Assembly (NCBI RefSeq): GCF_000142905.1
Contig: NW_013657642.1
Span: 290,551 to 354,550 of the forward strand
Direction: 5' to 3'
Source of the DNA: Thecamonas trahens ATCC 50062
Taxonomy: Eukaryota; Protista; Apusomonadida
DNA: 64,000 bases
A program made the position numbers and the translations under genes. The notes beneath the pieces were generated by a model that made no database searches, was not told where the DNA came from, and saw nothing but the letters and a program-made list of their open reading frames with translations. Shown here in pieces: positions 56,946 to 64,000 of this stretch (the stretch's first letter is position 1; each line of letters opens with the position of its first letter).

Positions 56946-57180
56946 CGCCTTACTTCGCTTAGAGCTCCAATGGCGTCGACACGTCCGGATCCAGAAGAGC
57001 GGGAGCCCACTCGCCCACCCTTTGATGACGATCTACAACGACATCGACTTGACTCATGTGCACGCGAGCTTGCTACGGCAGCTCAGGTACACGCGGGTCA
57101 CCGCGCCAATAGCACGATGTGCTGGCACAAAGGGGCAGGCCGCCGAGCCAGCGGAGCGACCGCTCGGCCGGGACTCGAGA
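56946..57180 (+). repeat. Dispersed repeat family, copy 2
   Basis: Homologous to 33060-33360, with internal deletions. Confidence 0.85.
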
Positions 57181-57484
57181 GCGTTCCTCAGCAAAAGTGT
57201 ACTTGAGCAGTACTCTGCAATCACCTGGCCCAGTGAGTCGATCGATGTGCAGTACGCCGAGGCCTGCGGCTCTGAGGATCGCTGCGGGCACGTTTGGCCA
57301 GGAGCAGCGCGGACAAAGTCGTTGTTGTCCTCTGTGCTAAAGGTGGTGAACGAGATGATGATGGTCTCGCGTGGGGGCGGTGATGTTCCAGGAGCAGTCC
57401 ATGTTGTTAGCGTAGAAGCCGCCATAGCTCGATACGTTGATCGACCCGGCGCGTCCGCCGGGTGCCGTCAGCATTTAGAGTCGC

Positions 57485-58877
57485 TTGCACCACCTCACCC
57501 GCACCATTGCAGCCACCCCCGCGTACGGCATTGTAGCTGCGTCGACGTCATGCCTCCTAGCCGGAACTTTCTATAGTTTCCCGCTCCTGTTCGAGGAGCT
57601 CAAGGGTCCGATGCGGCTGTCCCAGCTCGACGTGGCTGTTGCTGGCGCATGCGCATACTCAAGTGTGCTCATGTGCCTCTCCCTCGGCCCCTTCGTCTAC
57701 CCCGCCTTCCCAAGCCCCACCACCGCCATGTGTATTTCAGGTCATCGCTGCTGGCGATCACCGCTGCTTGGGCCATCCTCGGAAGCGCCACTGCCGTGAG
57801 CGGCACCTTCGCTGCCGTGCTGATGGCGGCTGGCGCAACGGCGCTTGGCGTGTCATGCGGGATGTCGTACCCGTACGAGATGGTGACGCTCATCATGGAC
57901 GGCCGTGTGGCAGATGTTGTTGCGGGTGGCTATGCGAGTGCCGTGTTTGCCTCGGCCGGCCTTGTTGCCACCGTGTATCTCGTCGTGCTGCAGCACGCGC
58001 CGCACCTGGGCCCCCTCGCTGCCATGCGCATCTTCGTGGCAACGTTTGGGTCCGTTTCGGCGCTGTTCACCTTCGCTGCGTTTGCTTACGACACATCACC
58101 GCCGGATCCTTCGCCGACGCTCGGGGAGGACTGTCCTCTGGTGCAGCCTGCCGAGGGGAACGAGCCAGAAGGTCCTCTGCGGACGCCGCGTCAGCTGCTC
58201 TCCGACGCTTTGGCGTTTCCGCTGCGCAAAGTCTCGTTTGCGCTTGCGACGGTCGTACTGGCGCTCAAGGTCGGCATCGGCGCCACGGCCATTGCCAACA
58301 TTGGTGCCGCGGTGGCGTCCGCGGGTGTCACCGGTCTTGACGTCGGCTGGGGCGTCGTTAAGCTCATGGCGGCGCAGGTAGTCGGTCGGATCACCCTCGC
58401 GAGCGTGTCTGCGCTCCCGCTGTTTGGTCAGGGACACGGAGCGCTGATCCTTGTCTCGCTTGGCTACACAGCGCTGTTTGGTTGGGCGTGGCTCGCAGGC
58501 GGCGTGGCGGCGCACAGCGTTGGGGCGTACACGATCACGCTTGGGTTCCTCTACGGCATCATGTGGACCGTGACGTCGTACATTCCCCGCTTTGCTCATC
58601 CCGTCACGAAAGACGTCGGCGACTACTGGCAGATCCTCATGAGTGTCGCGAACCCGTCGGCCATTTTCACCACCGCCGCGTTCGGTGCTGCCACAAGCTC
58701 TACGCTGCGCAGTGTCGCGCCGGTGAGAACAGCTGCGACGGCAAACACTGCTTCCGCGACTCGTTCCTCATGCTCGCGGTTGCCTCCGCAGTCCTCCTGG
58801 CCGCCTCGCTTGCCCTCACCCTCATCAACACCGTGTTCCAGGAGCGTGACGACGGCAAGCGGCAAGCTCACTCGTAA
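57485..58877 (+). pseudogene. MFS transporter (Nodulin-like/MCH1 type), split by two frameshifts (~57740, ~58690); pseudogene or assembly errors
   Basis: N-terminal AGTFYSFPLL..ELK...LSQ in one frame, TM core in ORF 57649, C-terminal CDGKHCFRDSF in a third frame. Confidence 0.7.
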
Positions 58878-58982
58878 ACCAGATTTTGTCTTTATCCACA
58901 GAGGACGACGACGTCGACTCACCCGAGCTCGGATGCAGCACAGTCCACTCCGCCACCGCGGAACCGGCCGATGTCCCGCACA

Positions 58983-59251
58983 CTCTCGGTTGCCGGCCGA
59001 GCGGTCGCTCCACTGGCTCGACGGCTTGACATTTCCTCGCATTTACTGTGCTGGCCATCTTTGCCAGCACATCGTGCCAATTGGCGCGGTGATCCACGTG
59101 TACCCGCGTACACACGAGATCAAGGTGAGAATTGGGCGCTCAGAGGGCGCCCCGTCGTCGTTGTCGTCGTCGCGTATCGTCGATCGGAGAGCCGACTGTG
59201 TCGAGGCCATCAGAGCGAGGTGGCAGCCGCTTTGATTCGCTCCGCTGGCCG
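58983..59251 (-). repeat. Dispersed repeat family, copy 3 (inverted)
   Basis: Reverse complement aligns to 33036-33364. Confidence 0.88.
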
Positions 59252-59420
59252 GGGCCGGTGGCGTACATGGCGCCGGAGCAGCTGCGCGAAGCCGAAGAGG
59301 GTTTTGAGGGCGACATGTTCACCTTTGGCACGCTCCTCTACGAGATGCTCATGCGGGCGCCGGCGTTTGATGGCAGCAATGCCATGGAGATTGGCCGCCA
59401 GGTCCTCACCAGCAACGCTG
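59252..59420 (+). pseudogene. Protein kinase fragment (subdomains VIII-X only)
   Basis: GPVAYMAPEQL...GDMFTFGTLLYEML..APAFDG; no upstream Gly-loop, VAIK, HRD or DFG. Confidence 0.75.
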
Positions 59421-59559
59421 CTAGTGCGATGGCGGGTAATTCATCAAGCGGTGTTGGTCGGTCGATCCGCTGGTGAGGCCCATGGCGCAGGAGGCTGCGG
59501 ATGTGCCGGTGGCGGCGAGGATGCGGGCGTGGTGCTCGGGGGAGAAAAGGCGGTGGGTG

Positions 59560-62500
59560 TTATGGATGGCGGCGGAGGATGATGGGGGGGCAGTTGGAGA
59601 ATACGGTGAGGAGGCGATTGGGGTCGGAGGGGTGGGGGATGGAGAGGCCGGTGTGGTTGGCGATCGTGATGCGGGTCCAGTTGTTGCGTGAGTGGATGGG
59701 GATGGAGCGGCGGGCGTGGAACCAGAAAGAGGAAGGGTGGCGGGCGTGGAGGGTGTAGCCGGTGGGGGAGGGGTGCCACTCGAACGTCTCGTCGGAGTAT
59801 GAGCGGGAGACCAGGACAGGCAGCTGGCCATCCGCACTCGGCAGCGCAATCACACCCCGCACACTGTTGGTGTGGCCCTCCAGCACCTCACAGGAGGCAC
59901 CGTCGGCGGTGTACCGCATGGCGCCCGTCCCGTTGTCCGCAGGATGCCACACCCGGATCGTCTTGTGGTTCGACCACGAGACCAGGACAGGCAGCTGGCC
60001 ATCCGCACTCGGCAGCGCAATCACACCCCACACATACTTGGTGTGGCCCTCCAGCACCTCACAGAATGCACTGTCCGCGGTGTACCGCATGGCGCCCGTC
60101 CCGTTGTCCGCAGGATGCCACACCCGGATCGTCTTGTGGTTCGACCACGAGACCAGGACAGGCAGCTGGCCATCCGCACTCGGCAGCGCAATCACACCCC
60201 ACACATACTTGGTGTGGCCCTCCAGCACCTCACAGAATGCACTGTCCGCGGTGTACCGTATGGCGCCCGTCCCGTCGTCCGCAGCATGCCACACCCGGAT
60301 CGTCCTGTCCTTCGACCACGAGACCAGGACAGGCAGCTGGCCATCCGCACTCGGCAGCGCAATCACACCCTGCACATCGTCGGTGTGGCCCTCCAGCACC
60401 TCACAGGAGGCACCGTCGGCGGTGTACCGCATGGCGCCCGTCCCGTTGTCCGCAGGATGCCACACCCGGATCGTCTTGTGGTTCGACCACGAGACCAGGA
60501 CAGGCAGCTGGCCATCCGCACTCGGCAGCGCAATCACACCCCACACATACTTGGTGTGGCCCTCCAGCACCTCACAGGAGACACTGTCTGCGGTGTACCG
60601 CATGGCGCCCGTCCCGTTGTCCGCAAGATGCCACACCCGGATCGTCTTGTCCTCCGACCACGAGACCAGGACAGGCAGCTGGCCATCCATACTCGGCAGC
60701 GCAATCACACCCTCGCACATACTTGGTGTGGCCCTCCAGCANNNNNNNNNNNNNNNNNNNNNNNNNNNNNNNNNNNNNNNNNNNNNNNNNNNNNNNNNNN
60801 NNNNNNNNNNNNNNNNNNNNNNNNNNNNNNNNNNNNNNNNNNNNNNNNNNNNNNNNNNNNNNNNNNNNNNNNNNNNNNNNNNNNNNNNNNNNNNNNNNNN
60901 NNNNNNNNNNNNNNNNNNNNNNNNNNNNNNNNNNNNNNNNNNNNNNNNNNNNNNNNNNNNNNNNNNNNNNNNNNNNNNNNNNNNNNNNNNNNNNNNNNNN
61001 NNNNNNNNNNNNNNNNNNNNNNNNNNNNNNNNNNNNNNNNNNNNNNNNNNNNNNNNNNNNNNNNNNNNNNNNNNNNNNNNNNNNNNNNNNNNNNNNNNNN
61101 NNCGCGGTGTACCGCATGGCGCCCGTCCCGTCGTCCGCAGCATGCCACACACGGATCGTGTTGTCTCTCGACCACGAGACCAGGATGGGCAGCTGGCCAT
61201 CCGCACTCGGCAGCGCAATCACACCCTGCACATCGTTCGTGTGGCCCTCCAGCACCTCACAGGAGGCACTGTCCGCGGTGTACCGCATGGCACCCGTCCC
61301 GTCGTCCACAGCATGCCACACCCGGATCGTCTTGTGGTTCGACCACGAGACCAGGACAGGCAGCTGGCCATCCGCACTCGGCAGCGCAAACACACCCCGC
61401 ACCCTGCTGGTGTGGCCCTCCAGCACCTCCACGCGTTCACCAGTTAGCACGTCAAGTACGTCCACATTCTTCCGACATTCACCAGCAACCAGCGAGCCAC
61501 CGATGTTGATGACTTTTTCGTACGAGCCATCAAAGCGAAAGCGCTCAGCACCACGATGCGCGAAAAGGGTCCACGGCTCTCGATGGAAAAAGAGCCCCAA
61601 ACGAGGCATCTTCGCTCACAGCAGCAACCATGTCCTTCACGGCTTTGGACGCCTTGACATAGGCAAGTCAAAGCAACAAGCTCGGTCTCGATGTGCGACG
61701 TACCGCTCTCAATGATTTCACGTGAGAGCGACAGCGCACGCTCGACCTCGTCAACGTCTTTGGCTCCTTCACAGCCAAGGCGCACAACACAACGCAGATC
61801 ATGGAGGAGGCCACCAAGCGAGTCGTCTGCGCGGGCTTTCATCCACGGCCAGGAGAGAGCAACGGCAACGGCAGCATGGTTTGCTCCAGCTGCAATCTTT
61901 CAAAATACCGCGGGTGACGATCCAATCGGAGGCAGTGCCAGAGGTCATGGTCTCCATAGCGGACTCTGGCGTGGCGCCAGGCGGAGGCACCCCGGCGACA
62001 ACGGCGAGGTGACGGGCAGGAAGGGAAGGGATGTCGTCAACGCACACCTCAAGCCGATGGCGAATGTACTCGAGGTGCAGATCGTGCAGCTCGACTACGG
62101 TTATGGCGCCGCCATCCGTGGCAACGACGCGCAGCAACGACGTGTTGGCGAGGGCATCGAGGGCCCTAGCAAACTTGATATTGCTTGCGTCGATCGCGGA
62201 GCGGAAGTTGGCGACGTCGATGGGCGCGTCTGATGGAAAGACGGCGAGCATGGCGTAAATAGTCAGCGCCACCTTGCGGACATGCTTGGGGATGGCACCG
62301 CCGAGGGTCCAAGTGATGATGTCAAAGATGTGGGCGTACTTGGCGTCCGATCCGCCGCAATCATCGCGGTGCTCATCCATGGCAAACTCGGTTGCATCTG
62401 CAGCGTCCTCAACAGCGTCGTCAAGTGCAGCCTCGCCAGAAATGGACGAGCCAAGGACGGCGAGGGCGAGGGCATGCCCACGGCAAAAGGTCGCGAGGGA

Positions 62501-63990
62501 GACGATGCGGGGATCGTCGAGAGCAAGGGTGTTTGCCCACTCAGGTGAGCCCTTGGCGAGGTAGTTGCGAAGGACAACAGCAGCGTCGTCCGGGCCAAAG
62601 GTGCCAAGCTTGATGGAGGAGGCGGTTGTTGGTAGCAACAGCGGCGTTACGCGAGGTGACGAGGACGGCATGCGGGCTGCGATGTGTTGGTGAAGACGGA
62701 GGCCTGCGGTGGTCCACGCATCGTCGAGATGAGCAAGATGCGAGTGCGGCATTGGCGAGGGCCCGGGTCTTGGCAGCAAGAATGGGTTGGAGGTCATTGA
62801 GGCCAGCTTGTGCATCGATTNNNNNNNNNNNNNNNNNNNNNNNNNNNNNNNNNNNNNNNNNNNNNNNNNNNNNNNNNNNNNNNNNNNNNNNNNNNNNNNN
62901 NNNNNNNNNNNNNNNNNNNNTCAGGAAGTAGAACATGCGGCTAGCAAGATCGGCGTGGACGTATGTCCTCACCAAGAGGGAGCCAGAAGACGGAGAAGGC
63001 GGAGATGATGGCGGGATGGATGGCGACATCGGCAGCGAGTGACGACTTGCCGACGCCACCGAGCCCGTTGACACCAACGACTGAGACGTTGTTCGCACCG
63101 AGAAGGACATTAATGACCGCATCACGAGTGTCAGGGAGCGGGTGGAACTCGGGTGGATTGAGTGGCGGTGGCATGGGTGAGGGGCGGAGGGGTGAACTGG
63201 GAACAATGGCCTGGATGCGGTCGGCAAGATCGTCGACCATGTCAACCACGCTGTCGCGAGCCGGGGAGTATGGAGCGAGGCCGCGCTCGAGGAGGGCGTA
63301 GAGAGTGCCGATGCGGGCGACTTTGAGGTCGGGCGTGAGTTCATCGTGTTCCCAGAGATCCGTGAAGCGACGGTTGTCCGGGATCTGCGACGGGAAAGCC
63401 GCCGCCATGTACGCCAGTAGAGGGTGGCTGGCATCCCGCGGGCCGTCACGCCATGCCGGCGACGAGACGGTCTCGAGCGAGAGCTCAGCGTCGGCAAAAA
63501 CCGGAAAGACCTTGCAAGTCGGATCAGCGAGGGCTGCGTCGGCCTCTGCGATGGCCCACCGTGTGACGATCGAGTACTTTGAGACAACGACGACCACAAC
63601 GTGTGAGTCACGGGCAAGCCGGGCGCAGTCTGCGGGATCTTGGACAATCATGGCGTCGAGCGACTTGACGTCGAGAAAGACGCGTAGACCGAGGGCAACG
63701 AGCTTGTCGCGGAGCGAGAGCATGAGCCCCTTGTCGTTGGAGCCGTGGCAGAGGAAGACATCGTATGACTTGGTGGGGATCTGGCTGGTAGTGGAGGACG
63801 GCCCGGCTGGTGACGATGACGTCGCTTCGATATGAATGTTCTGGGGGACTGCGGAGGAAGGGGTGGTCGAGCTGGCCGAGCTGGCGCTGGAAGTGCGCTC
63901 GACTCGCCCGGGGTCGGCCGGTTGCCCTGCGCGGCGCTTGGCAGAACTACCAGCGGCATACTCCGAACCGCCCCCTGGGGCGGGGTCCAT
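59560..63990 (-). CDS. TIR-NB-ARC (STAND)-WD40 NLR/Apaf-1-like protein; several frameshifts and two gaps in this assembly; may extend beyond the window
   Basis: TIR (YDVFLCH, RVFLD, VVVVVSKY, RWAIAE), Walker A GLGGVGKS, Walker B LDDAW, sensor LVTSR, CRGHALAL (GLPL-like), LHDL (MHD-like), then WD repeats LEGHT..V.GV...TIRVW. Confidence 0.88.
59809..61430 (-). repeat. 171-bp (57-aa) highly conserved WD40 tandem array; 8 units visible, about 2 more in the gap
   Basis: An anchor sequence recurs at 59810, 59981, 60152, 60323, 60494, 60665, 61179 and 61350. Confidence 0.96.
60742..61102. other. Assembly gap inside the WD array
   Basis: N run. Confidence 1.
62821..62920. other. Assembly gap (100 N, size unknown) inside the NB-ARC region
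   Basis: N run. Confidence 1.
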
Positions 63991-64000
63991 GGGCACAGTG

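Follow-up and report, generated by a model that had tools for sequence, protein, structure and literature searches.

Immunity of the NLR (nucleotide-binding leucine-rich-repeat receptor) type has, to our knowledge, been characterised in depth in plants, animals, fungi and, more recently, bacteria, whereas free-living protists have hardly been covered. Thecamonas is a free-living flagellate that branches next to animals and fungi, and the hypervariable, homogenised WD40 arrays that concern us below are best known from fungal allorecognition genes. TEP1/NWD1-type proteins with a TeTIR-NACHT-WD40 layout have also been described (preprint 10.64898/2026.09.21.753143). Here we analyse the gene that NCBI annotates as AMSG_12122, which lies in a stretch of 64,000 nucleotides (nt) from the genome of Thecamonas trahens ATCC 50062 (C38:290551-354550; the window) and encodes a TIR domain, an NB-ARC switch and an array of WD40 repeats. 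On balance, this locus is probably one copy of a T. trahens-specific family of NLR-type STAND (signal transduction ATPase with numerous domains) proteins with about 20 loci. With its TIR, a switch of the Apaf-1 type and a WD40 sensor that is hypervariable, the family looks like an immune or non-self receptor. Full-text literature searches on TIR, NB-ARC and NLR proteins of Thecamonas or apusomonads found no paper that describes it.

The gene copy reads on the minus strand, and its parts, in window coordinates, are as follows.

59560-63990, minus strand: whole gene copy, NCBI model AMSG_12122 (partial), with ATG at 63990-63988 and stop codon at 59562-59560
63766-63990, minus strand: Pro/Ser/Ala-rich N-terminal tail, variable among paralogues, with an 18-nt indel at about 63777-63794
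63481-63765, minus strand: TIR domain core, starting at YDVF and running to where the Pfam TIR_2 match ends; predicted helices continue to about 63217
63544-63558, minus strand: WAIAE (WxxxE motif), Glu codon at 63546-63544
62075-63126, minus strand: NB-ARC (NBD-HD1-WHD) region, broken by gap 1 and seven small indels
63043-63060, minus strand: Walker A / P-loop, GGVGKS
62714-62728, minus strand: Walker B, LDDAW
62649-62663, minus strand: sensor-1 / RNBS-B, LVTSR
62462-62485, minus strand: GLPL-like motif, CRGHALAL
62075-62089, minus strand: MHD-like motif, LHDLH
61430-62074, minus strand: helical linker, HD2-like by predicted fold in the paralogue, with indels at 61899, 61672 and 61566
61103-61429, minus strand: start of the WD40 array, 1.9 units of 171 nt
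59807-60741, minus strand: WD40 array, 5.5 units of 171 nt, 94% identity, with a +1 indel at about 60713
59563-59806, minus strand: final, degenerate WD40 unit followed by the conserved C-terminal tail, which has RRHP at its end

Pfam profiles were scored on separate pieces of the gene, with an intact paralogue used by reference; a single read-through carried an x at each break. The TIR_2 profile (PF13676) matches window positions 63481-63759 at E 1.1e-9 (39.2 bits against a cut-off of 28), and the WD40 profile (PF00400) exceeds its cut-off of 27 bits in both array pieces (7e-10 and 2e-19; 39 and 70 bits). For NB-ARC, the window fragment matches the first 50 positions of the hidden Markov model (HMM) at 22.6 bits against a cut-off of 23.5, because a gap and frameshifts cut the domain; the same model scores 52.1 bits in the intact paralogue. 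The Walker A, Walker B, RNBS-B/sensor-1, GLPL and MHD motifs are nevertheless all present in the window, in order, and can be aligned with those of the plant proteins NRC1 and NRC2. The Pfam scan found neither CARD, whose place is taken by the TIR, nor LRR in the window pieces and the intact paralogue, and in the latter it returned NB-ARC and TIR_2 and no match to NACHT or HET. An initial annotation, made from the letters of the window, had proposed a TIR domain that keeps the Glu of WAIAE at the WxxxE position, followed by these NB-ARC motifs and a WD40 sensor array, and had likened the tripartite layout to plant TIR-NLRs (TNLs), Apaf-1 and HET-E. All of these elements were recovered here, every motif on the minus strand, and the comparisons hold by HMM, fold and repeat analysis; the architecture thus stood, and the point left unweighed was that no open reading frame spans the copy as assembled.

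Paralogues of the gene are numerous. Profile searches of the whole genome gave 27 TIR_2 and 21 NB-ARC matches, and about 20 loci or fragments match the AMSG_12122 copy at 81-94% nucleotide identity, which supplies the genome-wide count that the initial annotation had called for together with an intact member. One example of the latter is on contig C59 (L023:1629-6488), a gap-free, intronless single open reading frame of 1620 residues. Intact family proteins are about 1400-1650 residues long, their genes are intronless, and they share one layout: a short Pro/Ser-rich tail, a TIR with the WxxxE Glu, an NBD-HD1-WHD-HD2 region with the full NB-ARC motif set, and WD40 units. A word-based protein search with the intact paralogue returned proteins of T. 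trahens ATCC 50062 and of no other organism; these carry the names 'WD repeat protein', 'ribosome assembly protein 4' or 'hypothetical'. Two TIR subtypes occur in the family, WAIAE, as in the AMSG_12122 copy, and FAMEE, with the Glu kept in both. The subtypes are about 79% identical in DNA, compared with 92-94% for the nucleotide-binding oligomerisation domain (NOD) behind them (L025, L022 and L035, that is, C22, C97 and C67b, against window 63481-63765), which suggests that whole domains have been exchanged between paralogues.

Almost every copy sits no more than about 12 kb from a contig end. We considered a subtelomeric location and set it aside: no telomere arrays were found at the contig ends that bear family copies, and several contigs break off within the repeat array; the near-end position may therefore reflect assembly breakage and not chromosome ends.

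We next consider the three domains in turn. In the TIR, WAIAE aligns with WTNYE of the bacterial AbTir, placing its W and E on W204 and E208; these two residues form the WxxxE motif of AbTir, and the E208A substitution abolishes its NADase (NAD+-cleaving) activity (bioRxiv 10.1101/2023.05.19.541320). The WxxxE Glu is invariant in nine aligned Thecamonas TIR sequences. An AlphaFold (AF2) model of the window TIR has a mean predicted local distance difference test score (pLDDT) of 82.5 and adopts a flavodoxin-like TIR fold, and a Foldseek search with it ranked plant NLR TIRs first (RUN1, RPV1, RPS4, RPP1, SNC1 and ROQ1), followed by the bacterial BtpA and AbTir. The best matches, to the TIR domains of RUN1, RPV1, RPS4 and RPP1, had E values of 4e-7 to 1e-5. 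By homology, then, the TIR may act as an NADase or in cell death. Two tyrosine kinase-like (TKL) kinases of T. trahens encoded on other contigs (P0016 and P0017) also end in a TIR followed by a post-TIR module, 41-44% identical to family residues 65-258, and these kinase-TIR fusions are possible TIR-TIR signalling partners.

The NOD was modelled on the intact paralogue and not on the broken AMSG_12122 copy. By sequence, it aligns motif by motif with plant NRC1 and NRC2. The model (pLDDT 83.1) finds its best match in closed, ADP-bound Apaf-1, over 519-533 columns with template-modelling (TM) scores of 0.69-0.71 (for 1z6t, E 7.5e-14 and TM 0.69), compared with only about 360-380 columns covered by plant NLRs. 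Given the length of the Apaf-1 match, the linker of roughly 200 residues that joins the MHD-like motif to the first WD40 unit appears, in this model, to behave like the HD2 of Apaf-1.

The WD40 array consists of tandem units of 57 residues (171 nt) that are 89-94% identical to one another within the AMSG_12122 copy. Eight units are visible there, around a gap of about two more, and intact paralogues carry 9 to about 13 or more near-identical units. Within this uniformity a few positions vary strongly: across 50 family units, entropy is 2.0-3.1 bits at unit positions 5, 6, 8, 28 and 30; positions 51 and 37 follow with 1.9 and 1.1 bits, and most others are near zero. In a set of 88 units, 82% of unit pairs differ non-synonymously at the five codons and 1.3% synonymously, compared with 18% and 5.6%, respectively, at codons outside the five. 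The top face of a WD40 propeller is formed by residues right after the GH and around the S-x-D turn, and the five hypervariable positions appear to map to this face. Three of the five complete units of the AMSG_12122 copy carry the identical five residues, a sign of recent unit duplication.

Taken together with what is established for Apaf-1, plant TNLs and bacterial STANDs, these domains suggest a candidate mechanism. The WD40 propellers would clamp the NB-ARC in its closed, ADP-bound state, and a ligand contacting the hypervariable top-face residues would release it. Nucleotide exchange would then allow oligomerisation, and the clustered TIR domains could form composite active sites that cleave NAD+, with NAD+ depletion or a nucleotide signal leading to cell death or defence. 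We tentatively put forward the broader possibility that Thecamonas has a diversifying repertoire of intracellular receptors, encoded by about 20 recombining genes, in which a plant-type TIR NADase sits on an Apaf-1-type chassis and five hypervariable residues per WD40 blade tune recognition; such an innate immune or non-self system would be independent of, but convergent with, plant TNLs and HET-E-type genes. Several points count against this proposal: alignments of the TIR to bacterial and solved NADase TIRs are weak by sequence (E 0.1-1), the fold search was made without residue-level superposition, and we know of no Thecamonas pathogens or cell-fusion biology that would supply an obvious ligand.

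The family could also be real and serve a role other than the sensing of pathogens through NAD+ cleavage, be it allorecognition, an Apaf-1-like scaffold for developmental or stress-induced death, or a TIR that is an adaptor only and signals, perhaps, towards the TKL kinase-TIR fusions of the same genome. The homogenised, hypervariable WD40 pattern, as best known from fungal allorecognition genes, fits such a role, as do the presence of TKL kinases with a C-terminal TIR of 41-44% identity and a NOD fold that is nearest to Apaf-1. Yet the catalytic-type Glu is invariant in all aligned Thecamonas TIRs, the TIR fold is nearest to NADase-active plant TIRs, and we know of no cell-fusion biology in apusomonads, so that a role of this kind strikes us as rather unlikely. 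The reading that we favour is a receptor that would signal by TIR-mediated NAD+ cleavage.

The AMSG_12122 copy, as assembled, is not an open gene: it contains two gaps of N and 11 small frame-breaking indels. When an intact paralogue was used as tblastn query, the motifs of the AMSG_12122 copy fell in different frames, with six frame changes, two of them across gaps. Nucleotide alignment to three intact paralogues located 10 indels, each of 1-2 nt and most of them in short homopolymer runs, and an eleventh lies beside gap 2. The breaks are listed below, with the sign giving nucleotides gained or lost.

62821-62920, no strand: assembly gap 1, 100 N, corresponding to 19 nt in three intact paralogues
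60742-61102, no strand: assembly gap 2, a run of 361 N that interrupts the WD40 array; the N count is not informative on true length or frame
62627-62962, minus strand: cluster of seven indels (1-2 nt) beside gap 1
62962: indel, -2
62748: indel, -1
62729: indel, -1
62708: indel, -2
62687: indel, -1
62677: indel, -1
62627: indel, +1
61899: indel, -2
61672: indel, +1
61566: indel, +1
about 60713: eleventh indel, +1, in a G run, 29 nt from gap 2

The initial annotation had allowed that the TIR and WD parts might belong to different loci joined across a gap. The flanks of gap 1 keep the order seen in the paralogues, and the piece with the TIR and P-loop is therefore collinear with the remainder of the NOD, which is also the arrangement of every intact copy. 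Gap 2 lies inside the repeat array.

The distribution of the indels bears on their origin. Eight of the 11 lie at most 200 nt from the edge of a gap, where 20% of the read letters fall (binomial P = 2.5e-4), and private substitutions peak next to gap 1 and next to the gap upstream of the gene. We also aligned read-derived contigs from three T. trahens runs and one marine metagenome to window 61440-63990. All contigs that cross 61564, 61899/61902, 62626/7, 62673, 62685 or 62707 have the frame-restoring form there, and the assembled form occurs in none of them. A contig covering window 62419-62706 (X2 record 14) shows two substitutions and three indel corrections relative to the window, compared with at least seven substitutions for the nearest assembled paralogue, and is not easily explained as derived from a paralogue. 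Most other family loci are likewise interrupted by runs of N with adjoining frame switches. Given the position of the indels near gaps, the frame-restoring contigs and the gap-ridden state of the other loci, we read most of the breaks as errors and not as decay, and consider it quite likely that the gene is intact in the organism and that the frameshifts are mostly sequencing or assembly errors.

This reading has its difficulties. Contig support covers six sites only, with none for 61672, 62729, 62748 and 60713, and since the contigs are short and the paralogues locally 90-99% alike, most contigs cannot be assigned to the AMSG_12122 locus with certainty. Over 62532-62706, the C67 copy equals the window sequence except for the indels. 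In the frame of the paralogue, the indel site at 61672 reads TGA, and true relics of the family exist elsewhere in the genome. The copy might accordingly be a genuine pseudogene, a decaying family duplicate whose frameshifts are real in the organism, as its eleven frame-breaking indels, the possible TGA at 61670-61668, 98 private substitutions relative to three paralogues and clearly truncated relics on C91, C36 and C75 would all allow. We find this unlikely: indels and private substitutions concentrate beside gaps instead of spreading along the gene, the frameshifted form was seen in no read contig at the six sites, and away from gaps the protein is 89% identical to the intact paralogue and retains every motif. 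It is highly improbable that scaffolding joined pieces of different paralogues across the gaps, with TIR, NOD and WD40 not belonging to one gene, since, although the nearest paralogue shifts along the gene (C70, C67a, C49, C22, C57, C97, C49), three gaps flank or interrupt it (including one of 1167 N that starts 10 nt upstream of the ATG) and several assembly contigs end within the repeat array, each piece between gaps crosses a domain boundary (TIR and P-loop; rest of the NOD and first WD40 units), the order and junctions agree with every intact copy, a paralogue mosaic is equally expected from gene conversion, and the architecture is unaffected because intact copies show the same layout.

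The contigs also yielded several observations on the sequence itself. The 18-nt insertion at 63777-63794 is in frame; contigs of runs X7 and X6 carry it, whereas X1 and X2 contigs and the paralogues on C59 and C64 lack it. A 504-nt marine metagenome contig (run X6, record 24), covering window 63329-63832, shows three differences only, with the 18-nt insertion included, and no assembled paralogue comes as close to the window. Several metagenomes from marine and estuary samples contain 20-38% of the words of the stretch. Such near-identical sequence indicates that T. trahens or a very near strain is present in marine and estuary samples. In two runs, contigs join 63175 to 63805 and thereby omit the entire TIR (629 nt). 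The junction lacks GT..AG ends and is anchored by only 30 nt in Pro-rich sequence; it probably reflects a repeat artefact or a paralogue that has no TIR.

The public annotation reflects the breaks described above. AMSG_12122 is a partial model of 914 residues that jumps from the P-loop region directly to sequence past sensor-1 and makes two further hops in the linker, and its introns only step over frameshifts. The partial model is thus an artefact of gaps and miscalled bases, and intact copies such as that on C59 are the better objects of study. A candidate splice donor, GTGAGG, after the P-loop region was rejected, as intact paralogues read through it in a single open reading frame and there is therefore no intron at this position. 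The gene ends about 2 kb from the end of contig C38. Upstream, the 1167-N assembly gap that starts 10 nt before the ATG (L021:551-1717, that is, C38:354551-355717, just past window position 64000) leaves the promoter and 5' untranslated region of this copy unread, and the gene is enclosed by three gaps. On the other side lies one further feature.

59256-59559, no strand: 3' flank, 82-96% identical to paralogue loci

Because it is common to paralogue loci, this flank belongs to the duplicated unit. Just 3' of the gene, the opposite strand carries a lone protein-kinase C-lobe fragment (window 59132-59473, plus strand) that matches Pkinase at 1.2e-7 over profile positions 161-212 only and overlaps in part with the shared flank. 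A dispersed repeat of about 200 nt, with at least 30 genome copies at 75-91% identity, occurs at window 58979-59190 and, inverted, at 57054-57185; the two inverted copies flank an open reading frame at 57649-59235.

A full HMMER scan against a library of 1.8 billion proteins identified relatives outside the family at only about 30% identity (26-31% for bacterial-type ones). They comprise other Thecamonas TIR-NB-ARC proteins (for example AMSG_05240), metagenome proteins with TIR-NB-ARC-LRR, TIR-NB-ARC, NB-ARC-TPR and NB-ARC-WD40 layouts, a TIR-NB-ARC-FGE-sulfatase protein and a SIR2-type protein from Pirellulales. The closest non-Thecamonas relative is a metagenome protein of 1075 residues (P0013, L043:2251-5478; 34% identity), which has the TIR-NB-ARC-LRR layout of plant TNLs. 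PADLOC models gave no match to Avs or bNACHT and weak TIR matches only (ThsB).

The family unites three parts that otherwise come from separate lineages, namely the effector known from plant TNLs, the Apaf-1 switch and the repeat diversification of fungal allorecognition genes, and, in a lineage near the root of animals and fungi, it provides a concrete, testable case for the assembly and diversification of receptors in single cells. Among the individual systems, Apaf-1 resembles it in the predicted closed, ADP-bound fold including HD2 (TM 0.69-0.71 for the model) and in a WD40 sensor with units enough for two propellers. It differs in its CARD N-terminus, where the Thecamonas family has a TIR, identity is only about 15%, and Apaf-1 is a single gene, whereas the Thecamonas family is multicopy with near-identical 57-residue WD40 units that are hypervariable at five positions. 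Plant TIR-NLRs (RUN1/RPV1, RPP1, ROQ1 and RPS4) share the N-terminal TIR with its catalytic-type Glu and provide the best fold matches for it; the NB-ARC motif set (as in NRC1/NRC2) and the organisation in multigene families with sequence exchange between members are common to both. Their sensor, however, is an LRR with a C-JID, in contrast to the WD40 sensor and HD2-like subdomain found here, and no EDS1-type partner is known for the Thecamonas family, where no search aimed at one was made. The fungal HNWD/NWD proteins (HET-E, HET-D and HET-R) likewise have homogenised WD40 repeats with variation in a few binding-loop codons and a number of units that varies by paralogue, but they combine a NACHT NOD, a HET effector and a 42-residue unit where the Thecamonas family has NB-ARC, TIR and 57 residues.

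Bacterial TIR- and SIR2-STANDs and NB-ARC-WD40 proteins share the modular layout of effector, NB-ARC and repeats at an identity of only 26-31%, and the Thecamonas family is nuclear, matched to its genome in G+C content, multicopy and eukaryotic. The TEP1/NWD1-type proteins (10.64898/2026.09.21.753143) similarly place a TIR-like NADase effector before a STAND ATPase and WD40 repeats in eukaryotes outside plants; in them, an extended TeTIR of 200-350 residues is joined to NACHT, as opposed to a canonical TIR_2 joined to NB-ARC. The NLR/STAND kind of receptor is therefore known, and the new element is the combination, in an apusomonad, of a canonical TIR with an Apaf-1-like NB-ARC-HD2 and a HET-E-like hypervariable WD40 array.

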